From Neoechinorhynchus agilis (lineage: Eukaryota > Animalia > Acanthocephala), in assembly GCA_051530055.1 (NCBI GenBank), contig JBMGUZ010000071.1:1-14159 (forward strand): a stretch of DNA of 14,159 nt, read 5' to 3'. The notes beneath the pieces were generated by a model. It searched no databases. It was not told the origin of the DNA and worked only from the letters and a program-made list of their open reading frames with translations. Of this stretch, positions 1 to 13,791 are shown one piece after another. Both the position numbers and the translations under genes were made by a program. How positions within the stretch are numbered: the stretch's first letter is position 1; every line of letters begins with the position of its first letter.

Positions 1-608
1 CCTTCATTTTTGTGAAAGTTACCCAGTGTGATTTAATTCCCCTACCCGAACCGCCCACATTCTCCGCCACTTCCAGTGGTGCCGAGCAAAGTAGGGCATA
101 CGGTTGTGCATTAGAATGCTTTTTCAAGTATTTAATCGGAGTAATCCCAATCTCTGTCTCAATTTCTTTGAATTCCTCTTTTGACAAATCTGGCGGTGGA
201 TTAAATATTAATAGAGTACTTTTTGAGGATAGGTCGGTGTATTTTATTTTCAAATCATTTAGCACAAAACACGTACTTGATTGCAAATTTAGTTTCGAAA
301 TTACTTGTAATGTTGTAGCTCATGACATTTTCCTTTTCTCTAGGCTTTAAAAATTTGAAAAAAAACATTTTTGCCAGAGAAGCCGGGGTTTCCTCTTTCA
401 ACTGTTCTTTATCGATTTTGATGACAAAATTTTCTTTTTTTTGTAGGTCTTGTAATTTTTTCATAATTTTCAGATGAGGAGCTTTTTGGGAGGACACTAT
501 CACACGAAAAAAACGTTCACTAACACACGGGGGAAAACTAACCGTTCCTGCATCTTCCAAAGCAACAACCTGCTGAACATCCGGAGGGTCCGTATATCTA
601 TCCATCAT
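1..608 (-). mobile_element. Probable frameshifted remnant of a LINE ORF1 (gag-like/RRM-type) protein, running off the left edge
   Basis: ORF 608-255 (..FVIKIDKEQLKEETPASLAKMF..) overlaps a +1 frame open from 319 to position 1 (..STLLIFNPPPDLSKEEFKEIETEIGITPIKYLKKHSNAQ..). Both segments resemble I/Jockey-group ORF1 patterns by eye. No zinc knuckle or ORF2 is visible in the window. Confidence 0.4.
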
Positions 609-1451
609 TTTTAACGCAAATTTTTTTTAACTAACTTCGCGCTTTTACAGATGAAGGGTGTATAGAAAAGTAATCCACGAATCAAAAAGTTGGCGGTTTG
701 ATGAACAGTAAAAAGCCACCGAATGGTTCTGAGTTTTCTGCGTTCGTATGAAATCAATGGAATACTAACGAAAGTACATGGTAATAGTTTTAAAAATGAA
801 AACATCGAAAAAGGGGTTGATTTCGATTTTTCATTGGTGCAATAAAAAGATGAACTGCTAACATAAATGCTCAATATCAACTCGAACTACCTTAAAATAA
901 ATTTATGTAAAAAGCTCATTGATCAGATATCCACCGAAGGACGTGTAATAATGAATGGGCTGGCTTATGAATTTAAACTTAGGATTGCTTAGATGTTATC
1001 GACAATGCCAAAGTTACTTTTTGCTAAGACTTCCAAAAAAATATATTCCAGCTGATACGACTAGCGGCTTCCAGCTCAAAAACGCACCTTTCTGCTTGCG
1101 ATTCCTGGAAACCCAACAGGACCAGATTCCCCGCTTATTGATCACAGTTAGTTGATAATAAACTTAGTAGTTAGCTAATTGAGTTCTTTTGCTTGACTTA
1201 AACACGGGAATTTCCTTTAATTTGGAAAATATCATCTGACATTGGTGCTTTTATTTAATCGCAAAATTTCTCGCGCTTTCACTGAGCATGCAATAGTGTG
1301 GGTATTGTTTTAAATTTTGCACTTATGCTTAATTTTCAGGTATATTTTTCTTTACATTTTAAACATATTATCACTTACTATATTCCTCTTTAAAAAAACG
1401 TTGTCAAACATTCTTGCTATAAGACGCCTTATTTAGTAATCAACTCGTTAG

Positions 1452-1522: not shown

Positions 1523-1935
1523 ATGAGTATCTCTCTCGAAACCGTAGCCACGCCAGCTATATTCTCCGCGGTTAATGCGGTAAATTTTGGCTTTCCTTTA
1601 CAGTATTCTATCACATTTATTTTCATTAAAACAGATCCATGAAGAGGTTTGCCATGCTTTGGGATTGGGTTGTTGCATTATCACACCAATCAGCTACAAA
1701 TCACTCGGCCTAGAATCTGATCCGACCATTTATTTAGTGAAGGTATGAGGTTGTTTCACCTTTTAGCACTTTAATTTTATTCTTATAGGCTATTGTGACC
1801 AAACCTGGATGTCCACCGGAGGACACTGTTTGCCTGTTTAGGATTGCAGTCAATCTCAATAATGCGGAGAACTTATACACTCTTGTGTCCGTCAAGTGCA
1901 ATGTCCTTCTTGACGATGAGATCATTGCATTCTAA
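1523..1935 (+). CDS. Cys-rich stefin (type 1 cystatin)-like protein A, 103 aa; join(1523..1579,1635..1742,1789..1935)
   Basis: Two phase-0 GT-AG introns (55 and 46 nt). MSISLETVATPAIFSAVNA|IHEEVCHALGLGCCIITPISYKSLGLESDPTIYLVK|AIVTKPGCPPEDTVCLFRIAVNLNNAENLYTLVSVKCNVLLDDEIIAF*. Length, intron positions (after codon ~20 and after Y-x-V-K) and the DDEIxxF tail match stefin A/B architecture (human CSTB introns follow codons 22 and 56; its tail is HDELTYF). Two paralogs in the window confirm the exon model. An in-frame TAA lies upstream of the ATG. Confidence 0.85.
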
Positions 1936-1975
1936 AGAGTAGCAGCCGATTAAGAGCAGATTAGTTTAGAACCTA

Positions 1976-2011
1976 TTATCGCTCTATAGATTATTAAATG
2001 CATTAGCTAGC
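1976..2011 (+). terminator. Putative polyadenylation/3'-end element of gene A (TTATCG ... ATTAAA-N5-TAGCTAGC)
   Basis: TTATCG 1976-1981, ATTAAA 1993-1998, TAGCTAGC 2004-2011. The same arrangement follows paralogs B and C. Confidence 0.6.
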
Positions 2012-3302
2012 TTTTCTTGGTATGTGAATTGAGACACTAACCAGCTAAGGACATGTCCAAAATCATTGCTATGGTCAAAATACAAATTTAAGCTCAACTT
2101 CTCATTTCTACCCCTTCCAATGTTTTATCCGACAGTGGATATTGACGAGAGTGGATCTGGGCTTTTGTCTGATAAAAACACTTCTTAGCAAGTCAATGAA
2201 CCTTGACATAAAAACTTGAGCAAAAAACTTAAGTGTGGCTGCAGGCACTTATGTCGCTTTCTGCTACTGTTTCAATCAAAATTTTATAACAAAATTCTTA
2301 AGTCACGTTCTTATGAATTTATCTTTTTAAAAAACGGAGGGAATAATAGAGTTTGTCCATTCAGTTCCAAAATCGTACAAAAATATTATTATTCCAACCA
2401 GTTATTGATAATTGCATTCACTAAATAAATCTTTGTTCGAAGCCAAACGGATCAATATAGCAAAATCGCCGTGATTATCAGCTCCTAACTGCCAGGCAAC
2501 CGCAATAAAATATTTCATGTGTGATTATTATTGTTAAAGCCGCATAAAATTAGGAAAGTTCTCTAATGTTTCCTCTCACATTGGAAACATCATAAAAAAA
2601 GAACAATATGCAAATTGGATGGAGCATGTTTTGATATCGGAAAAATCAGTGCAATAAGACCACATTCCTAGCTTTGGCATTGATTTTGAATGTTTTGGAA
2701 GCTATAATCTCGTCAATTCTGGTTGGAAACTTCAAGCCTAGTGTATCTTGCAGAAGGAATTCCTGAAGAAGTGGGGAAAAAGGAAGGCCAGAGTATGATT
2801 TCCTAAATCCCCATTTGAGAATTATCACTTGCTGCGGCATTCTGGATGGTACTTTGCCAATGGTGTGACCATGATTTTGCGTCTGGATTCGGTGCGTTGT
2901 TAAGAATTATGATAATTTCAAAGCATGGCTATTCTTTTACGGCACGGATTAAGATACCAACTGAAATCCGTGACCTGATTAACTTTGAAACGCAAATTGA
3001 GAAACGACAGATAATCCCATATTTTGTCCTGCGGCATCTTAATCCCACCGGTATGATCCATAGAATTCAACCTCCTCTTCTGCTTACAATTTTATCAACG
3101 CATTTGGTGAGCGGGGGGAAACCAACTATTCAAATTTTAGAGGATCTTCTATGAAACGTTTCGAAAAGGCGGATTTGTGATTTGAAAAAGTTGCAAAAGA
3201 CGAGATAGCCGCAGGTGAACGAAGGGAAGTCCGATTGACCACGCTTTCAAGCGAAGGTCGAAAATCGATTTGCAATAGCGATTGCTCCACTGTATTTCAA
3301 CC

Positions 3303-4054
3303 TTCTTTGACTCTAGTATGGGAGCAAAGATGGACAATCTTCAACCGTAATTTTTGGTGTTTTGCGAACGGCTTAATGAATTACCCTCAAACGAGGCTCT
3401 GTTCCTGATCAAGGACACCTTCTTTATTCCAAAATCGCTTTATAAGCTGCGTACAGCACGGCTGGAAAAATAAGACGGACCTCTCCCGAAAAAATTTAAA
3501 AATACTCAGCGGTCGGACGAGGCGCGGCGTCAAGCGTCCTTGATGTGTGGTCCGACGGTTCGGATATCCGAAAAGCTGCCGATATTTCTCTGCCAACTTA
3601 TTTGGGATCGTGTGAAGCAGGTGGTAAAATAGTGCAGTCTTTTCTTGGCGATGATTACACTTTGGATGAAGATTTCGTGGAGGCTGCTAGTTTTTTATGT
3701 GAACATTGTGGTAGCGAGTAAGTAACCATCAATGGTTGTAACCCTCGTAGCGAAATTCATAACTCTTTAATTTCAGATTCTCGTGACCTGGTGAACCGAA
3801 CTCGATTGGCGGCGGTCTCTACAAGAGAATCAGATGCTTGGCTCAACACAATCCTAATCGCTTCGGTAGGTACCCTTCTCTCTAACGAGACAGTAAGGAT
3901 TGGAGTGTCCTTGAGACTTGGGTACCGATGTGCACATCTTATGGCTGATGATACGGAGCAACGGTGGAACCATCGGGACGTCATGGTCTCGTCTGCCGGC
4001 AGTCAAAAGGAAGGTACTTACGACACGCCGAAGTGAACGCATTTCTTAGTCGTG
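3303..4054 (+). mobile_element. Decayed CRE-clade non-LTR retrotransposon fragment (copy 1): post-RT region and zinc-knuckle region, endonuclease missing
   Basis: With stops and frameshifts it reads CERLNELPSNEALFLIKDTFFIPKSLYKLRTA, DIRKAADISLPTYLGS, RTRLAAVSTRESDAWLNTILIASVGTLLSNETVRIGVSLRLG and GATVEPSGRHGLVC, all typical of CRE/RLE elements. It aligns in inverted orientation to ~11240-11930, and homology stops at about 4054. Confidence 0.85.
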
Positions 4055-4156
4055 AAGCTCCTTTGGTTCAACTGCAGCGTATAAAAAATTAAACGACTAT
4101 TTAATGTGAATACTAATAATTTACAACTATTGCGAGTTACTTTTTTAGTCAGTACC

Positions 4157-5784
4157 CTAATGCCACCGCGTTTTATGCCAATTGAAGTCAAATGGCCGTT
4201 TTTTTGCTTTAGGCTCTGCGATCTCTATTGATTGTTTCTCCTCCTCATTTTTCTCGTCTTTTGTCCGGTTCGTAATGTGCAGCATCGTAACGTAATCCAC
4301 TTGAGCGGGGGTTAAGTTGTCTTTTGGTCCTCCGTACGGAACTCGATGTTTCGCCATCAGTGGAACCAATTCGATCCACACAAAGCGCCTAACTTGATTC
4401 AGCTCCAAAGCGTCTATTGGTGACCTCTCTTTGAATTTCTCTACTATTTCATATGATCGAGCAACAAGATCTTTATCAAGGTCTAAAAGGAGGAAAATTG
4501 AATATTGCTAATTTGGATAATAACATTTCGAATTAAATATCTTTACAATATCTTACCTTTAATTTTTCCTTCGTTCGCCATCCCGAGGAATCTTTCAATT
4601 GTAGGAATAATGGATTCTATATAATGATATTGCCTCCATTCACGTAGATCATCCGGCACCACCTCTTCATTCTTTCCTTTTTTTGGCCGTTTAGCTGGCG
4701 GCGGCTCATTATCAGTGGTTTCGTCGGCGGCCAAATCAACCTTTGGTCTCCGGCCTCGTTCTTTGAGTCTTCTCTTCAGTTCTCGCGTTAAATTGCAAAT
4801 GAATAACTCAGACAGTCCATGATAGTCTGACATGCTTGGTGAAACTCTGAACATCTCCGCTTCAATGGACTCAGGCGAATTCTGTAAGCGCAAAAAATGC
4901 GTAATCATTAACTTTCTCCTGCAATGATTAGAATTTATGATAAAAACAACTCTCAACCTTACCTACATGGCTTTTAGGGTTCGTTGACGAGCTTCAATAT
5001 ATTCCGGATCTAATGGCTGCTGATCAAGCACTGATTGCTGCTGACTTTGCGGCATCCTTTGATCTCTATTAATCATTTGGTACGGGGCGACATTTACATG
5101 TTGCATTGGATTGATTTGTTCGTTTCTGGGTTGTTTAGCAGTTTGTTGTATTTCAATTATAGAACGACGTTCACCCAACAACGCTCTATTGACCATTGTT
5201 CTTTTAGCTGCCTGATGTTGTTCAAGGACTGATTGCTCCTGACTTTGCGCTATTTTTTGGTTCTCGTGTCCAATGACCATTTTCTGTTGACCTCTATATA
5301 TGTTTTGCATCGCAGCAGCTTGCTGTTGATCGTAAACTGCCATTTCCATTGGATATATTCGCTGATACATCGGATTGTTGATCATTTTTTTCTGGTCATG
5401 TACTAAATTCTGCATTGTAGGTAATTGTTGTTGGACAATAACCGACTGCTGCATCAATGGCATTCGTTGGTTCATCGGATTGTTCGTCATTTGTTGCTGA
5501 TCAACCAATGGTCGCGATCCAAACGGCAGTGGGCCTTGCTGAGAACAATGCCCTATTGGAAGTACCTGCTCAGATATTTGACCCTGCTGTCCATTATTAA
5601 TTGCTGGACATTGCGGAATTCGGTGTTGAAATTTGTTGGCCGCTGGTACGCTCTGATTATTGCACGAGTATTGCCGTTGATTATAAGTTGCAATAAATGG
5701 CAGTATGTCACTTGGTTGAACGTTTTTAGCTGCAGACCCGCGTAGAATATTTTGCATTTGTTCATGCTCCCATGTCTGTTGCAT
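4157..5784 (-). CDS. Uncharacterised 501-aa protein with Gln/Met/Asn-rich repetitive N-terminal half and NLS-like motifs; complement(join(4157..4482,4557..4918,4967..5784))
   Basis: Three track ORFs (4963-5784, 4543-4956, 4157-4408) join in frame through GT-AG introns 4919-4966 (48 nt, GTAGGT..TGCAG) and 4483-4556 (74 nt, GTAAGA..TTTAG). Total is 1506 nt with no internal stop. Basic motifs PPPAKRPKK and PKAKKRP are present. An additional upstream exon cannot be excluded. Confidence 0.8.
5016..5505 (-). repeat. Imperfect internal coding duplications in the Q-rich gene
   Basis: QSQEQSVLEQ (~5215-5250) versus QSQQQSVLDQ (~5016-5052), and DQQQMTNNPMNQRM (~5460-5505) versus DQKKMINNPMYQRI (~5356-5400). 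The similarity is also visible at DNA level. Confidence 0.7.
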
Positions 5785-6586
5785 GGGCGCCCGGTCGCTA
5801 AATAGAAGGATCCCTTAGATAAAAACGAATGGTATGTCAAAGATTGACGAAATTTTGGAGATACTAGATTTTAGCTACCCTTCTCGATGCTGTGATATTA
5901 ATTCTTGAATGATATGAACATTTTTGAACGACGTCAAACGACATTTGTGTACATGTCAATATTTTTAACAATTAAGTCGATCAACAATGCTAGTTTTTGT
6001 CATAACCCCAAATATTTTCTAAAAGTCCAAGAGTCCGACATTTGACCTCATCGTTTAGCGCATGTATTTAAAATAGATTTTAAATGAAAATTCTTATCGC
6101 AGTAAATTAGTTCGACAAGTTGGTTCATAAAGTATCGAATTGTGTAATTTCCTTTTATCGATTATTTATACAATTTAGTTCGACAATCGTAAGTTGAATG
6201 CTTTTTCGTAGTTCTCCTTTTTGAATTCGTATTATGCATCAGTAAATCTGAATGATTCAATTCTCGACATTATGATTTTTTACAATCGGTGTACGGCGAT
6301 CTCAATGTCGTATATTTAGTTTCGATAAGACTGCCGATTTAATAAAATACTTGAAAAGTAGAAAATGCTGTTTTTTATATTTAATGCGTAGCCGTAAAGG
6401 TTCATGGAGCATATTGGTATATGTTTTTTTAATTTTAACAAAGATGAAATTTCAGTGTCTTCATTTAGCTCAGATGATGAACATAATAAGCTTGACAATT
6501 ATCGGCAATGTATAGATGCTTGTTGCACAAATATTTATAACTCGTATATTTAATAATGTGGTTATTATGTACACCTGATTGCTCAA

Positions 6587-6604
6587 TTTGCTAGAAGGAT
6601 AAAG
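6587..6604 (+). promoter_or_regulatory. Upstream motifs of stefin-like gene B (TTTGCTA, GGATAAAG)
   Basis: TTTGCTA 6587-6593 and GGATAAAG 6597-6604 appear in the same order as upstream of gene A. Confidence 0.35.
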
Positions 6605-6661
6605 CGAGAGGTTTCAAATCTTAAGAACGTATTGTTTCTCCCTGAATATCCTGAAGAGAAA

Positions 6662-7071
6662 ATGAGCAACATTAGTGGGGAATTAGTTATATCCTCGACC
6701 GTCTATGACGCTATTACTCAGGTAAACTGAAAAATTAATTTCATTGCGCTCTTTAATGCTCTTAATAGCTCAAGAACCAGATCTGCAACGAGCTCAGTAT
6801 GTGCAACTGCGCACTTGCACCACTTTCTTATAAGCAGGAAACTGTCTCAGATGTCCCGGTCATGTATTGGGTTAAAGTATGTATTTTCTTTGCTTTAAAG
6901 ATTGATCAACTCTTCTTTACTTAGACTTCAGTTTATTATCCAGATTCGTGCAATGCAAAGTGCATCTGCATCTTTAAAGTAGCAGTGGATCTAACTAACG
7001 GAATAAATCCCTATACTCTAGTGGCCATCAAGTGCAATGTCAGACTTGATGATGAAATCGAAACTTTCTAA
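6662..7071 (+). CDS. Cys-rich stefin-like protein B, 104 aa; join(6662..6721,6769..6876,6925..7071)
   Basis: Phase-0 GT-AG introns of 47 and 48 nt; exon 2 is exactly 108 nt as in A and C. MSNISGELVISSTVYDAITQ|LKNQICNELSMCNCALAPLSYKQETVSDVPVMYWVK|TSVYYPDSCNAKCICIFKVAVDLTNGINPYTLVAIKCNVRLDDEIETF*. The last 36 aa align without gaps to the end of human stefin B ([36 protein letters not shown], recalled). Confidence 0.88.
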
Positions 7072-7099
7072 GTAGTGAGCACATTAGAGTAGTTTAGCT

Positions 7100-7134
7100 T
7101 TATCGGATTAACCACAATAAACTCATTAGATAGC
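7100..7134 (+). terminator. Putative polyadenylation/3'-end element of gene B (TTATCG ... AATAAA-N5-TAGATAGC)
   Basis: TTATCG 7100-7105, AATAAA 7116-7121, TAGATAGC 7127-7134. Confidence 0.6.
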
Positions 7135-8083
7135 AGTGAATGTAAGTGTTTATTAAAATCCGTACACGGGTTACGAACTCCAAGATGAATTGTACGCATA
7201 TTGCATTCAAGTTCTTATTGAGTACTTAATGTTTTGCTTGAAATATAATACGGAATGGTCTTTGGAATTTTTAATAACAACGTAGATAAGTCCCAACATT
7301 GAACTATGGACGCCGTTGAAATTATTTGTCACAATTGCTATTTCAGGACTGATTTAACTTCTACCATTATTCATGTTTTATTTTCAACGTTTAATTTATC
7401 GTAAACCCATTGTCAAGAATAAAAACAGATAAATGTATTAGCTTCGTGCTTAAGCATTTAATTATGAGCTTATTAAAAAAAATTATAAGTGTGCGAGGTT
7501 ATCTCTGTTTTCAAAGCTCTAATTTCCAATCAGATCTCACATGGCACAACTCAATCTCAAAAATATTAAAGGACTCGTCAATTAATTCGACCAATAACGT
7601 AATGACATCTTCTGTGAAAATTCTTTAGCATTATCTTGCAAGAATTCGATTTTAATAATGCCAAAAGTTGACACATCAAAAATGTGTAGTATAAATTTAA
7701 ATTGTGCAAAGTATCTGGCGAACGAAACTACACGTTTCTTTAAAATTTCTACCTTACCTTTATTTCAAATCACTTTCATTCATTTATCTTTCAGCATAAG
7801 CGTTCATCTATTATTTGATTCGTTGTTTAAAGTAAATTCATAGCAGGATCAAAATCTATCTTGCCGTGCAAATCACGAAACCAACAGAACAGCAAAGAGT
7901 CATTTAGGCCCAATATTTTGGAAATTATCGCAAATTTTTTAGCTTGTATATTCGCTAATTAAAAATTAAAACCTATGCGTATTGATATATGCAGAAGTTA
8001 GTGGAAAATTTTCTGTGTTTTTAATTTAAGTATAAATAAAAAATTCTATCGATAGAAAGTCCTTCGGGACAATAAAATTGCAG

Positions 8084-8197
8084 TTTCGGTGAGAATAATC
8101 CCGGTCATTACATATTTTATTTATTCGAAATATTTCGCGAGATATCCTCGCCTCTTCAGTCATCTAAAAATAGGTATTCCATATTACGATTTTTGCT
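8084..8197 (-). repeat. 3' pseudo-LTR of the Penelope-like element
   Basis: Reverse complement of 10248-10361, with 111/114 positions identical by hand count. It starts about 40 nt after the endonuclease stop codon. Confidence 0.93.
8126..8162 (-). ncRNA. Minimal type I hammerhead ribozyme motif (sense to the PLE ORF)
   Basis: UGA-CUGAAGA-G-GCGAGG(AUA)UCUCGC-GAA-AUAU-U-UCG. It has the CUGANGA and GAAA core, a 6-bp stem II, a palindromic AUAU in place of stem III, and a short stem I (UGA/UCG). This architecture is known from PLE pLTRs. Confidence 0.7.
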
Positions 8198-8237
8198 CGA
8201 GTACGCGGGATCGCCAAACCCGAAGTTCAAGGACCAA

Positions 8238-8990
8238 TTATCCGCTCGAACCCCCTGAGCTGTGTTTCGTTTTTTGTTTTTCCATTGATTTTTTTATATT
8301 GATTTTTATCACGTCGCTGGCTGGAAGTTTCGAGCTAAAATTAGCTTTATTTCCCTCCATTGTGTTTGACGCAGCGATGTGTAAAGCCTCTAAAACCAGG
8401 CGTCTTTTTAAGATTTGTTCCTCTTCCATGAAGTAGGTGCCATTAAAATCAGCGCGATGCTTAAAAGTCTCTTGATGATTTGAGATTGCCGATGAATGCT
8501 CAAATCGAATGTAAGCTTGCTTATGTTGCGAGACCCTCTTCTTAATGCCCTTCATCGTTTGTCCGATGTAGACTTTATCACACTGTTCACAGTGCATTCT
8601 GTAAAACCCATGCATCGGCTCAGTTTTACTCTTCCTCTTGAATGTGCATCTGAGGGCGATTCCTTTATTGTTATAGAGACGAGTTCCAGCCTTCTTACTC
8701 ATAATGGAGTAGATCATTTGATTTGTTTCATCATTAATGAAGTTCACTTTTTCGAAACATATAAGCTCTGTGGGCGATTTTTGGTTGTGGTTGTTGTGTG
8801 GATGGTACTTCCTGCTTTTGATTCCGCGGTCTATAATCCATTTGGGATATCCCATCATTTTTAGCTTCTGGACTATCTTCTCCCTTTCTTTACTCCACGC
8901 CAATCGAGTGGATGAGATAAGAGAGGCTCTTCGGAAGTATGAAGAGACCGCCGAGATTTTATGCCTTATCGGTTGGTGACTTGACCAATG
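8238..8990 (-). pseudogene. PLE ORF, C-terminal part: RT thumb/linker and GIY-YIG endonuclease, out of frame with the RT core
   Basis: The frame reads HWSSHQPIRHKISAVSSYFRRA..KLKMMGYPKWII..HGFYRMHCEQCDKVYIGQT..KRVSQH..SAISNHQETFKH..RRLVLEALHI. This includes the GIY(GFY)-CxxC-YIG arrangement and His residues typical of PLE endonucleases. Confidence 0.9.
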
Positions 8991-8992
8991 TG

Positions 8993-10247
8993 ACGAAAAA
9001 GTGAGGTGCTAACTTTGCCTTGTGATGAGCGCTTAACAAGGACGTCCAGGAACGAGACCTCACCGTACATGCCCTCTTCATTGACTGTCCACTGCATGTG
9101 TGAATCTTGAATATTCAGATCAGCATCTAGTGAATCTTCGTTGTGGTTTGAATCAGTTAGAATGAATGCATCGTCTACATAACGCCAACATCGATTTACA
9201 TAACTATGAAAATCCAAGAAAGTGGACTCCCAATCCCGCATGTAAATGTCGCACAAAGTCGGAGCTAGTGGAGATCCCATGGCTACACCATCTTTTTGAT
9301 CGTAAAAAGAACCCTCGAATTCGAAGGCTGTCATACTCGTGCACCATTGAATTAGGGAATACCACGTACCACGGTCCAAACGTGGTTCACTGCAATTCTT
9401 CGATAGTAAATCAGCTGATAGTTCGATCGTTTTGGTCAACAGGACATTGGTGAAAAGAGCATTAACATCGGCCGTAAACATTCTGTGGAGCTTAACGTTT
9501 ATTTTCCTGATCTCAATCGCAAACGTAGGTCCATCCTTGATGTGCGAGGCGGAAGTTGCTACAATCGATCTTAATAAAACATTAATCCTTTTGGATAGGC
9601 GATGGTTGAACGACATGTAACTGGCTATAATTGGACGGTACTGCATGATTGGCTTGTGAATCTTCGGAAGGAGATATAGAAACGCACACTTAGCCGATGA
9701 TGATCGCGTCGCGTTGTAAAATTGAAGACTGATCAGAGACCTGTTCAACAAGTTCCTTAGGAAACCGTTAAATTTAATTTCTCTGCTTCGCATGGGATAT
9801 TTCGCCAGCCTCACGAATTTGTCAGAGTAAAGAGGATCGATAGCCCCCTTTTGATAACCTTCCATGTCCACAGCTACTAAAGCGCGTCCTTTGTCAGATT
9901 TGCAAATCATTATTGATGCCACATGCTTCACAGACTTCGCGATTGCCATTTCATCATTATCGTTGCGAACGTTCCGACTACGACCTTTCCTGTCATAGGC
10001 CACAATTGAACTCATCAGATCTGGATGTGAGTTTATGAGCAGCTCTGTATCACATCGGATTTTAGTCGATCGAATCTTATTCTTAATAATATAGTCGGGT
10101 CCCTTGTTCAGCAAATTCAGTTGCCTTGAGGAGATAGTGCGTTTTGATTTATTTACGAAGTAGCCGCGCTCTTCCCATGTTTTCGGTCTTAATTGTTCCA
10201 GCTTCCATAAGTGGCTCGTGGCTGTATGATCTTCCTCGATTGATACT
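8993..10247 (-). pseudogene. PLE ORF, reverse transcriptase core (part of track ORF 8966-10393)
   Basis: Motifs LLNKGPDY, KSDKGRALV, YLLPKIHK..RPII, ADVNALFTNV, QKDGVAMGSPLAP, RYVDD and SFLDVLV are present with no internal stop. A frameshift occurs at 8991-8992. Confidence 0.93.
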
Positions 10248-10361
10248 AGCAAAAATCGTAATATGGAAAACCTATTTTTAGATGACTGAAGAGGCGAGGA
10301 TACCTCGCGAAATATTTCGAATAAATAAAATATATAATGACCGGGATTATTCTCACCGAAA
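10248..10361 (+). repeat. Inverted 5' pseudo-LTR copy of the Penelope-like element
   Basis: Inverted copy of 8084-8197 (3 mismatches in 114 nt). Confidence 0.93.
10283..10319 (+). ncRNA. Minimal type I hammerhead ribozyme motif (antisense to the PLE ORF)
   Basis: CUGAAGA 10286-10292, extra G, stem II GCGAGG/CCUCGC (10294-10299/10303-10308, fully Watson-Crick), GAA 10309-10311, AUAU 10312-10315, predicted cleavage after U10316. Confidence 0.7.
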
Positions 10362-10795
10362 GTGTAATAAAAAATTCTTTTATTGATACTCAATACATCT
10401 TTAAAGTAAACTTAAAATTTTCAATACAGATGTATATTTTTCAACATTTGGGAAATCAATAGGCAATTTAGAAAGCTACAAATTTGAAGAATATATTAAT
10501 ACATAAATTTAAGATCAATGGCATTGTGCTTTAAGGTAATAATTTTCATATTCTTGTGTCTAATCGGATTCTTATTTATGGTCACTCATATAAATCTTGG
10601 TTACAAAAGATTTCTATAGAACTTTAATCCATCAAGATAAATCGATGATTTTAAACCCAACAGACGAGCAGAATTTTATCGTTTCGATTATCAATCTACG
10701 AATCGCAATAATTTTAATAGATAAGCTGATTTATTGTAATTCTTATTATTTAAGACAAAAGTTTTTGTACTTATATAACACGTTGATCATTCACA

Positions 10796-12720
10796 TCACC
10801 GCTCTGGACCACTCAGCTGCCGTCCTGGTGTAACGGTCGAAAGGACTGATGCAGCGTTCCACCGTAGCACAGCCAGACTTATATTTTGTTTGAAAAATGC
10901 TCCTGATCTCGGATCGCCAGTGATTCGTCTCAATCTCTTAGACAATTGCTTCACCAGGTCTTGCGCCGTAGTACCGAACGACCCACGTGCTTCGACGCCA
11001 AAGGGAACAAAATAATGATTTCGACCCAAGTCCCGGTATTTGGCCTTTTTGCGTTCTTCAGCGACGATTGCTGCTCCACCTGTTTAACAGCGGCGAATTT
11101 TATATTGTTGGCTGCGATTGGCGTCCCAAAGAAGGCATTTTCCTTCTCGCCACGGGAATACTGCAAGGCCGTCCGTTGTACGGCTATCGAGTTAGCCAAG
11201 ATTGCTTGGCTTTCGGATGTTGGCCGCATTCACAGTATTCAGGGCATGACTAGTAATTGCGTTCACTTCGGCGTGTAGTAACAACTTTCCTTTGGTTGCC
11301 GACAGACGAGACCATGACGTCCCGATTTTTCCACCGTTGCTCCTTAACGGTTACCATAGGATGTGCACATCGATATCCCAAGTCTCCGGGACACTGCAAT
11401 CCTTACTGTCTCGTTAGAGAGAAGGGTACCTACCGAAGCGATTAGGATTGTGTTGAGCCAAGCACCTGATTCTCTTGTAGAGACCGCCGCCAATCGAGTT
11501 CGGTTCACCAGGTCACGAGAATCTGAAATTAAAGAGTTATGAATTCTTGCTCCGACGATTGCAACCATTGACGGAAGCCTGTTTGCTGTCTGAATCTCCA
11601 CATCACAGATTAAGAGCATCCACGAAATTTTCATCCAAAGTGTTATTCTCGCCAATAAAAGACTGAACTATTTTGCGATGTGCTTTATAAGGCCCCAAAT
11701 AAGTTGGCAGAGGAATATCGACTGGTTTTCGGATACCCAAACCGCTGTAAGACCGAGGTTTAAAATATTCTCGAGAGAGGCGCGCAGCTTATACAACAGT
11801 TTTGGAATGAAGAGGGTGTTTTTGATAAGGAACAGAGCTTCATGTCAAGATAATTCATTAACTCGTTCGCACAGCACCGAAAGTTGCGGTTGAAGATTGG
11901 CAATCTCTGTTTCAACATTAGAATCAAAAATGCAGTTTCCTAGAGAACTCAAGCGGTCTTGAGTTATAAATTCTATCGCGGGTGCCAGGTTCTAATATCT
12001 CTCAAGAAAGTTTGCCTGGCCGCCTCATCTTCCACGTTCATCACTAAAGTCTCGCATTTCGCAACATTCAATTCAATGCCAATTTTCGCCGACTCCTTCA
12101 CGAATGTACAGGGGAGTTGAAGTCCCGTGGGCATTAGCGAAATAGCGAAATGCTTCTGGTGCGTGATCTCCAACTAGTTCGAGCAGTTCTGCTCGGTGAA
12201 CAGTGTTGAATGCATTTTTGAAATCACATTTCGAGATCACGCGCGGCTTTTAGTTTCCGGTGATGAAAGTTCGGAGTGAATGAAATGCATTTTTGAAATC
12301 AAATTTCAAGATCACGCACAGCTGTTAGTTTCCGGTGATGAAAGTAGCAGCCAAACTGAGTAGGACGAAGCAGCATCAAAATTTTTGCTGTTAAGCGTCG
12401 CAGAGTTGTTCCGATTACAATGTGGCGAATCCCACCTTCCTTTTTCGCGAGGGCACACAAAGATACGCCGAAAAAAAACTTAATCGCTTTCGAAATCAAC
12501 TCTCCCGCTGCCAATTGGTCGATTAAGCGTGCCAATGGATCTTCAAGGGACTGAGCAGCGTCACCTACTTAAAAAGAAGTCATATCCTTTAGGTGTTGGG
12601 GCCAGAGCCCGTGATCTGATCCGTTAGCATCTGAGGATATATCGTCTTCACTTCTGATTTCGATGATAAAACATAAGGAATCGTATCGAAGGGGGAATAT
12701 TTCACGAAATACTACCGACC
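10796..12720 (-). mobile_element. Decayed CRE-clade non-LTR retrotransposon (copy 2): partial RT plus restriction-like endonuclease
   Basis: RT motifs GLWPQHLKD, FFGVSLCALAKKEGGIRHIVIGTTLRRLTAK, DFKNAFN and IGIELNVAKCE. Then EALFLIKNTLFIPKLLYKLR, GRHGLVC, and endonuclease DGLAVFPWREGKCLLWDA..AEERKKAKY..FVPFGVEARGSFG..ISLAVLRWNAASVL. Many stops and frameshifts. The 5' boundary is approximate. Confidence 0.9.
12209..12345. repeat. Tandem duplication (62-bp units, 75-bp period) of the RT motif A region in CRE copy 2
   Basis: 12209-12270 versus 12284-12345, 57/62 identical. Each unit encodes KxDFKNAF on the - strand. Confidence 0.9.
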
Positions 12721-13383
12721 GCAGTCACTGAAATATTGCATATGTTTTTCATTCGTGAAACATTGGTGTCATCTCCGCCCCTCCGTAGCGATCACAGTTT
12801 AAATTTTCCCGAATGCGATTTAAAACAGCTAATCTAATTTTACTACAATCGAATCCATCTCATGAACAAGTTCTTTTGTTTCATGGATGAGGCGTAAATA
12901 GTTACATATTTTCAAGACATACTTTCTAAATAAGCAAATATTTAAATTCATTTCAAAATAAAATATTCAAAGTCATAATTAATTAAATTTAGCTCCAGAA
13001 AAATCACAGGTTTTTAAACATTAATGCCGACAAGTATCGGAAAAAAATTATGTTCGTTGATATCCTCAATTCTGATTTAATTAGGAGCCTCCAAACAAAA
13101 ATGAGCTGCAACTAAGCTTTGATAGGACTTTATTGTTGTTAAAAGAAAAATCAATGCAAATGGAGGCTTGGATTTGTGCACATAACAAAAAATTCACATT
13201 GAAATTGTTTAGACTAAATGTAAAATTGGACATCATACGAGGCTTTAGCTTATGTTTACCAATAAGCTATTTTGATATCGTGGTTATTGATTCTTCATCA
13301 ATTTGTTCCTCTCTAAAACCGGTTATATCGATGTGAATCGTAATTCATACATGTCAATTGTGTAATACTATCCTACTGACGAG

Positions 13384-13791
13384 ATGAGCTACACCAGCGA
13401 AGCTTTGCCAATCAAACAAGTTTTCACCGCAGTAGAGACGGTAAATATACTAATGAAACTTTCAATCGAATTCGAGTTTTTGTATTTAGCTCAAGGATGA
13501 TATCTGTAGCATCCTTTGTCTCCCAGAGTGCGCTCTTACGCCACTTAGCTTTAGACAGCTCATGATTAATGGAACTCCAATCAATTACTTGGTCAAGGTA
13601 AATTACTTATTAAAGCAGCTTTTATTCTAACATCTCCTTTTAAATAGACGAGCGTGACCCAAAAGGATTGTTGTGATCATTCAACGATTTGCATTTTAAA
13701 GATTAGAATAGTCAGTGTTACACCCGCAGAGTATTCGTTCATATCAGTCAAATGCAACGTTCCTTTAGAAGAGGATATTATTCCATTCTAA
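13384..13791 (+). CDS. Cys-rich stefin-like protein C, 102 aa; join(13384..13440,13490..13597,13648..13791)
   Basis: Phase-0 GT-AG introns of 49 and 50 nt; exon 2 is 108 nt. MSYTSEALPIKQVFTAVET|LKDDICSILCLPECALTPLSFRQLMINGTPINYLVK|TSVTQKDCCDHSTICILKIRIVSVTPAEYSFISVKCNVPLEEDIIPF*. An in-frame TAA lies upstream of the ATG. Confidence 0.85.

Follow-up and report, generated by a model that had tools for sequence, protein, structure and literature searches.

A family of five stefin-like genes without canonical inhibitory motifs in the acanthocephalan Neoechinorhynchus agilis

Contig JBMGUZ010000071.1 of Neoechinorhynchus agilis (assembly GCA_051530055.1), an acanthocephalan gut parasite of fish whose hosts are thin-lipped mullets, was analysed over its whole length of 14,159 bp, hereafter the window, and carries three spliced genes, A, B and C, whose products are predicted to adopt the stefin (type-1 cystatin) fold. 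Together with two chromosomal paralogs, D and E, they probably constitute a functional, lineage-restricted five-gene family of N. agilis, which arose from a duplicated and strongly diverged stefin gene, rebuilt the inhibitory wedge (the N-terminal trunk and the first and second hairpin loops, L1 and L2) and gained cysteines.

A, B and C lie on the + strand and consist of three exons each (57–60, 108 and 144–147 nt). All six introns are 46–55 nt long, run from GT to AG and interrupt the frame in phase 0, and a poly(A) signal follows the stop codon of each gene. The encoded proteins of 103 (A), 104 (B) and 102 (C) residues are acidic, have a mass of 11.1–11.6 kDa and are 35–40% identical in pairwise comparison. 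An initial annotation of the window, made from the sequence alone, had placed three spliced paralogs of about 30–40% identity here, with a shared exon layout in which exon 2 measures 108 nt; the genes indeed stand at the same places and on the same strand with canonical junctions, the layout is exact, and the agreement goes far beyond chance. Specifically, the hand-spliced proteins are identical to the GenBank models ACOME3_004828 (A), ACOME3_010775 (B) and ACOME3_004824 (C), all named "hypothetical protein". Since these deposited models were guided by mRNA-Seq, the junctions of A, B and C are independently supported. The genes had also been called hidden, which is right for a prokaryote-style list of open reading frames (ORFs), from which they are absent, but not for GenBank, where they are annotated as hypothetical proteins. 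The exons are as follows (a slash marks the exon-intron border).

A exon 1: 1523..1579, + strand; ATG start, codons 1–19, donor GCG/GTAAAT; N-terminal trunk and first half of the helix
A exon 2: 1635..1742, + strand; 108 nt, codons 20–55, acceptor ..AACAG/ATC, donor AAG/GTATGA, phase 0; end of the helix, β2, L1 'LGLESDP' and start of β3, the last residue being aligned with K56 of human CSTB
A exon 3: 1789..1935, + strand; codons 56–103 and stop; β3–β5, L2 'NLNNAENL', tail DDEIIAF
B exon 1: 6662..6721, + strand; codons 1–20
B exon 2: 6769..6876, + strand; 108 nt, L1 'ETVSDVP', acceptor ..TAATAG/CTC, donor AAA/GTATGT, phase 0
B exon 3: 6925..7071, + strand, including stop; L2 'DLTNGINP', tail DDEIETF
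C exon 1: 13384..13440, + strand; codons 1–19
C exon 2: 13490..13597, + strand; 108 nt, L1 'RQLMINGTP'
C exon 3: 13648..13791, + strand, including stop; L2 'VSVTPAE', tail EEDIIPF

The polyadenylation signals are ATTAAA at 1993 (A) and AATAAA at 7116 (B) and 13844 (C). Between the contig and the chromosome, the coding sequences of A, B and C differ at two positions only, both synonymous: 1899 C>T in Cys92, the sole haplotype difference of A, and 13767 A>G in Leu95 of C. Exon 3 of B is 100% identical to its chromosomal copy. The GenBank annotation of the two genomic copies is inconsistent for two of the genes: B appears as 74 residues from an internal Met on the chromosome (ACOME3_004826) and as the full 104 residues on the contig (ACOME3_010775), and C as 102 residues on the chromosome (ACOME3_004824) and as a partial model of 76 residues on the contig (ACOME3_010777).

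On chromosome CM121342.1 the genes stand in the tandem order D-A-B-C, with D (ACOME3_004829) directly upstream of A, while E (ACOME3_004838) is found on the other strand at a distance of about 47 kb; D and E each have exons of 57, 108 and 147 nt. All reading frames and all ten splice-site pairs of the five paralogs are intact despite only 35–52% identity, and 18 alignment columns are invariant. The initial annotation was thus correct about the cluster of three but not about the size of the family. In the window, tblastn with the family detected no extra copies or pseudogene fragments between the genes. HMMER, run exhaustively over 1.84 billion representative proteins, and two word-indexed searches of 5.8 billion proteins found no family member outside N. 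agilis. Cystatin, stefin and cathepsin are not mentioned in the genome and transcriptome paper of N. agilis (PMC12690905).

Fold and gene structure of the family

AlphaFold models of A (predicted local distance difference test, pLDDT, 74) and of the more divergent C (pLDDT 80, predicted template modelling score, pTM, 0.74) show a single helix and, after it, four long antiparallel strands. When compared with the PDB by Foldseek, both models match human stefin B first (template modelling score, TM, 0.70/0.78 and 0.72/0.80; root-mean-square deviation 2.7–3.0 Å) and Dictyostelium cystatin A2 second (TM 0.71/0.73, 24% identity). Further matches include stefin B of the papain complex, stefin A, a Fasciola type-1 cystatin, phytocystatins and the engineered proteins SQT and Adhiron, while type-2 cystatins reach only TM 0.53–0.57. 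The stefin-like fold anticipated by the initial annotation is therefore recovered in two separately modelled paralogs, which match stefins best. An NTF2-like fold was rejected, with TM of about 0.4 against 0.7–0.8 for stefins.

A profile built from the five proteins and run against the whole PDB gave a sole near-significant match, again the Dictyostelium stefin cystatin A2 (8gqq, expectation value E=0.037), and the alignment spans the block from the helix through β2 and L1 to β3 as well as the C-terminal tail. Three other results were set aside as chance: a clostridial neurotoxin chain in the same profile search (E=1.6), ubiquitin variants as the only matches of A in a phmmer search of PDB sequences, and the Pfam families VERL, DUF2703 and DUF7748 in the scan of the five proteins (E≤10).

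The gene structure follows that of stefins closely. The exons of human CSTB comprise c.1–66, c.67–168 and c.169–297 (PMC10814315), and these borders therefore define two phase-0 introns, one after Q22 (between Q22 and V23) and one after K56 (between K56 and V57). In all five genes of the family, exon 1 ends at the position of CSTB Q22 and exon 2 at that of CSTB K56, as placed by hhalign, by MAFFT alignment of A–E together with 25 stefins and by the HMMER alignment to 8gqq, all made with no intron information. Additionally, exon 2 measures 108 nt versus 102 nt in CSTB, and the extra 6 nt are exactly the two-residue insertion in L1. The first intron of CST3 lies inside QIVAG. The stefin gene of a planarian also has three exons, of 66, 84 and 132 nt (PMC4390278), whereas the type-2 cystatin genes listed there are built differently, for instance with exons of 102+72+246 or 207+151 nt (PMC4390278 Table 2).

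No signal peptide is apparent in the family, the maximum ten-residue Kyte-Doolittle mean being 1.2–1.8 and the net charge over residues 1–8 being -1 or 0. An upstream exon encoding a signal peptide was rejected for A, in which an in-frame TAA stands 7 codons before the ATG and the 'MS/MN' start is conserved, as in the GenBank models. At the other end of the proteins, the tail D-[DE]-[EDG]-I-x-x-F is kept throughout the family and is of the stefin type. Because the fold, the CSTB intron positions, the missing signal peptide and the stefin-type tail point the same way, the descent of A–E from a stefin gene is well supported.

Inhibitory wedge, cysteines and selection

None of the three canonical contact elements of the stefin wedge is preserved in A–E. 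The N-terminal trunk is 3 residues shorter than that of stefin B and has no Gly at the aligned position; B alone has a Gly nearby (G6), which agrees with the earlier remark that only B possesses an N-terminal Gly. In L1, the QVVAG of stefin B is replaced by LGLES, ETVSD, LMING, LIVDS and LTASS in A to E, and each of these is extended by two residues, the second of which is an invariant Pro, so that the loops read SLGLESDP, QETVSDVP, QLMINGTP, ALIVDSKP and ELTASSLP. L2 contains no LP (or PW) in any member. The most stefin-like L1 is that of C, the only member to retain the Gly of the motif, which is aligned with G50 of stefin B, as Met-Ile is with V47–V48. The L1 strings LGLESDP, ETVSDVP and LMINGTP and the L2 strings NLNNAENL, DLTNGINP and VSVTPAE given in the initial annotation are exact, and its scaffold motifs (P-x-S-[YF]-[KR], P-x-x-Y-x-V-K, KCNV and acidic-I-x-x-F) hold in A, B and C; the loss of QxVxG that it described applies to all five proteins, and the alignment with stefin B confirms that L1 is 2 residues longer. 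Since all three contact elements are gone, tight inhibition of papain-family (C1A) peptidases in the stefin manner is improbable, and A–E, as judged from their sequences, are probably not tight C1A inhibitors of the ordinary stefin kind.

Cysteines are the most distinctive derived feature of the family, about which the initial annotation was silent. Each protein contains 6–8 of them, among which C25, C33, C70 and C92 are invariant in the five paralogs; every member has an additional Cys at position 63–65 and a further, 'floating' one between positions 22 and 32. The β3-β4 loop carries a 6-residue, Cys-bearing insertion relative to stefin B. Under each of three MAFFT modes, C70 is aligned with Cys97 and C92 with Cys117 of human cystatin C (whose sequence was verified), with agreeing flanks; in type-2 cystatins, Cys97 and Cys117 form the conserved β4-β5 disulfide. 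One further Cys column of the family, that of C63, is aligned ambiguously with Cys73 or Cys83 of cystatin C. The strand boundaries of the model of C place C70 and C92 in direct cross-strand register, from which we infer that they face each other across β4/β5 at the type-2 disulfide position. The other conserved cysteines would be located at the pole opposite the wedge, namely at the C-terminus of the helix, the start of β2 and the β3-β4 loop. In the modelled fold, the conserved cysteines probably serve as a brace, either as disulfides or as a metal site.

The variability of the family was measured as mean pairwise identity of the five paralogs by structural element, and Nei-Gojobori proportions of nonsynonymous (pN) and synonymous (pS) differences were calculated for the ten pairs. 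The mean pairwise identities are as follows.

L2: 0.19
β3-β4 loop: 0.26
Helix: 0.30
L1: 0.31
Helix-β2 loop: 0.37
N-terminus: 0.44
β3: 0.46
β4: 0.47
β2: 0.50
C-terminal tail: 0.59
β5: 0.69

Taken together, the three wedge elements have the same identity as the distal loops (0.31 and 0.31; column permutation p=0.05). Over the whole proteins pN is 0.29–0.46 versus a pS of 0.65–0.87, with dN/dS of 0.15–0.27 where computable, and within the wedge pN (0.37–0.65) is smaller than pS (0.70–1.04) in 10 of 10 pairs, although the synonymous sites are largely saturated and the selection test is weak for that reason. Because pN is below pS everywhere, the wedge included, the family appears to be under purifying selection with no loop-diversifying regime. 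L2 is, in these alignments, the least constrained element, and nothing in them indicates diversifying selection of the kind expected of binders. The earlier statement that the paralogs diverge most in their binding loops thus holds for L2 (19%) but not for L1 (31%), whose variability does not exceed that of the helix (30%) or the β3-β4 loop (26%). Its comparison with variable-loop binders is only an analogy, given that pN is lower than pS in all pairs and that the wedge equals the distal loops.

Alternative explanations and relation to known cystatins

The course of events that we consider probable would start from a stefin gene that duplicated and diverged strongly in one acanthocephalan lineage. 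The stefin architecture has been kept, with about 103 residues, no leader, one helix on an antiparallel sheet, the tail and three exons. The wedge has been rebuilt by a shortened trunk, an L1 lengthened with an invariant Pro and an L2 devoid of LP or PW, and cysteines have been gained that probably brace the fold through disulfides or a metal site. A conserved fold with a remodelled wedge would more likely bind something other than C1A proteases. In its most specific form, which we put forward tentatively, this explanation holds that leaderless, Cys-braced cystatin-fold proteins no longer inhibit papain-type enzymes, have turned to a new target and have independently re-invented the β4-β5 disulfide. 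Such a target could be, for instance, a factor of the host's gut or immune system, met after unconventional secretion from the tegument, or else a metal, acanthocephalans being noted for their accumulation of metals.

Several points weigh against the explanation by a diverged stefin. The Pfam cystatin family PF00031 is matched by none of the five proteins (E≤10). An hhalign comparison with 2 and with 24 vertebrate stefins yields an end-to-end alignment at P≈0.016–0.019, and the real score is also reached by 5 of 300 column shuffles and by the reversed family; since the controls score equally high, the hhalign result was dropped as stand-alone evidence. Similarity of sequence to stefins is hence not significant and by itself proves nothing, and the profile search proposed in the initial annotation turned out divided, with PF00031 unmatched and hhalign not exceeding its controls on one side and the near-significant 8gqq match on the other. 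The AlphaFold models were built on alignments of only 3–4 sequences and are of moderate confidence, and the Foldseek E-values are only 0.01–0.03. With regard to the wedge, it is only the absent motifs that speak for a loss of inhibition, and a degenerate Q-L-M-I-N-G loop persists in C. With regard to the cysteines, MAFFT favours Cys-Cys columns, the proximity of the residues was judged from strand register and not from distances, and disulfides are odd in a leaderless, presumably cytosolic protein. The lack of relatives elsewhere may come in part from the poor sampling of Acanthocephala, and the search with human stefins was filled by vertebrate matches and is uninformative about a canonical stefin of N. 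agilis.

The alternative that deserves most attention, possible though doubtful, is that A–E are still inhibitors of cysteine proteases, with loops re-tuned to C1A peptidases of the parasite or of the host (mullet gut), or to another class of protease. The fold, the C-terminal tail and, in the models, the geometry of the wedge are kept, the whole protein is under purifying selection, and L1 still forms a hairpin, which in C (QLMING) and D (LIVDS) has hydrophobic residues. Other cystatins of parasites whose motifs are atypical act in this manner; stefins with an unusual binding site have been reported from parasites, among them that of Eudiplozoon (PMC5727476), and SQAPI is a cystatin recruited against another protease class (PMC2784779). 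These points are set against the absence of the three canonical contact elements in five of five proteins and an L1 that is two residues longer with an invariant Pro. Additionally, no inhibitor family model matches the proteins, and inhibition of the legumain type was rejected as a family trait, the Asn in the helix-β2 loop being present in B alone.

That the family goes back to a secreted type-2 cystatin, whose signal peptide would then have been lost, and not to a stefin is improbable. It would account for the alignment of C70/C92 with Cys97-Cys117 and of C63 with Cys73 or Cys83, and for a β3-β4 loop 6 residues longer than in stefins. However, both introns occupy the CSTB positions, from which the listed type-2 genes differ (PMC4390278 Table 2), the tail is stefin-specific, TM is 0.7–0.8 to stefins versus 0.53–0.57 to type-2 cystatins, and the proteins have a size of about 11 kDa and no signal peptide. 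Convergence, in which an unrelated orphan family would have arrived at a roll of helix plus sheet, is very improbable: it is compatible with the insignificant sequence similarity, the hhalign score equal to that of reversed and shuffled controls and the missing Pfam match, but it leaves to coincidence two phase-0 introns placed exactly as in CSTB (roughly 1/100 to 1/300 per intron by chance), the common DDEI..F tail, and the fact that the best PDB sequence match and the best structural matches are all stefins. It is scarcely credible that the copies have no function and are duplicates in decay or artefacts of annotation, as the transposon-rich surroundings and the inconsistent GenBank models of the two genomic copies might suggest, in view of the five of five intact frames and ten intact splice-site pairs at 35–52% identity, the 18 invariant columns, a pN well below pS, the mRNA-Seq-guided models and a compact (46 Mb) genome that has lost many genes.

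The reading as a diverged stefin lineage makes A–E a variant of the stefin system and not a new kind of system. Like the stefins (I25A; CSTB, stefin A and cystatin A2, 8gqq), A–E are acidic, leaderless proteins of about 100 residues and 11 kDa, at TM 0.70–0.80, with three exons, the CSTB intron positions, a block [YF]-K ... Y-x-[IV]-K and a tail D-E-[LI]-x-x-F. Unlike stefins, they lack the N-terminal Gly, QxVxG, the LP of L2 and a Pfam cystatin match; L1 is longer by 2 residues with an invariant Pro, the β3-β4 loop is longer by 6, and the N-terminal trunk is shorter by 3. They have 6–8 Cys, four of them invariant, whereas stefins have none conserved, and they form five paralogs, whereas stefins are usually single or few. 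With type-2 cystatins (I25B; cystatin C and chicken cystatin), A–E share the Cys pair at β4-β5 and a lengthened, Cys-containing β3-β4 region, but differ from them in the lack of a signal peptide and of QxVxG/PW, in gene structure, in the stefin tail and in a TM of only 0.53–0.57.

Monellin, SQAPI, fetuins, latexin and cathelin domains resemble A–E in having kept the cystatin fold and lost the canonical inhibitory motifs, and they demonstrate that this fold lends itself to re-use; no sequence relationship between this group and A–E was found, and monellin, SQAPI and fetuins come from the type-2 or plant cystatin lineage and not from stefins. The engineered binders SQT (6qb2, TM 0.66/0.70) and Adhiron/Affimer (4n6t, TM 0.54/0.67) also share the fold and have replaced inhibitory loops, but the loops of A–E are not hypervariable relative to other loops, and the resemblance is conceptual only.

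Stefins are described as conservative, usually single-copy or few-copy, intracellular and disulfide-free proteins that keep the Gly and QxVxG throughout eukaryotes, even in flatworms (PMC2784779, PMC4390278). The well-known cases in which the cystatin fold changed function belong to the type-2 and plant lineages. A stefin family devoid of the motifs would be an unusual case of neofunctionalisation; invariant cysteines at the type-2 disulfide position and five copies in the very reduced 46-Mb genome of a parasite are noteworthy as well. The assignment also gives a fold to five "hypothetical proteins" of a parasite of fish aquaculture. Were the Cys-braced proteins indeed directed at a new target, they would offer a natural case of stefin neofunctionalisation combined with a convergent cystatin disulfide; were A–E ordinary inhibitors after all, the stefin wedge would tolerate far more sequence change than assumed.

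Source contig and surroundings of the genes

The published assembly of N. agilis, 46.2 Mb in size, consists of 102 contigs, with 94% of the sequence in three of them, and was annotated by BRAKER with mRNA-Seq; the genome is compact (46 Mb), and many genes have been lost (PMC12690905). The window is one of the minor contigs, of eukaryotic character, with a G+C content of 30–49% and short introns. The part from 1148 to the 3' end runs collinear with chromosome CM121342.1 (97.7–99.4% identity).

The 5' end of the window (1–1147) is not collinear with the chromosome. Positions 657–997 correspond to chromosomal sequence beyond the window's own end (L003 17176–17517, 98.5%), positions 1004–1133 are 83% identical to the body of the adjoining C1q-like gene, and positions 1–656 have no match in the compared chromosome stretches and contain ORFs without a Pfam hit. 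Because the 5' end matches the C1q-like gene, a fragment of that gene stands upstream of A in place of paralog D. The junction either marks the edge of a duplicated unit of A, B and C or results from a loop in the assembly.

Between A and B, two glutamine-rich ORFs of 273 and 137 residues lie on the minus strand at 4543–5784; they belong to a single GenBank gene model of 501 residues and have no Pfam match. Between B and C, the minus strand of the window contains a Penelope-like retroelement (8077–10368), which is present in the chromosomal copy too and has the following parts.

8966–10393, minus strand: reverse-transcriptase ORF (PF00078)
8238–8903, minus strand: GIY-YIG nuclease ORF (PF01541)
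8077–8197 and 10248–10368: inverted repeats of 121 nt, about 96% identical

Copies of a dispersed repeat are scattered around the stefin-like genes (3335–4054 and 10785–12277 in the window; L001 5665–6863); they are 78–88% identical to each other and in part inverted. Downstream of C on the chromosome (L003 17423–20273), three C1q-domain genes (PF00386) are arranged in tandem, and upstream of D there are a 224-residue protein without a Pfam hit, a 2OG-Fe(II) oxygenase gene and a carnosine N-methyltransferase gene. The alignment with the chromosome is broken at 12108–12277 / 12278–12546, where about 270 nt of the window face about 75 nt of the chromosome. The region 12108–12546 has a local near-duplicate, in which '...tgcatttttgaaatca[ca]atttc[ga]agatcacgc...gttagtttccggtgatgaaagt...' is present twice, and this suggests a small tandem duplication polymorphism.

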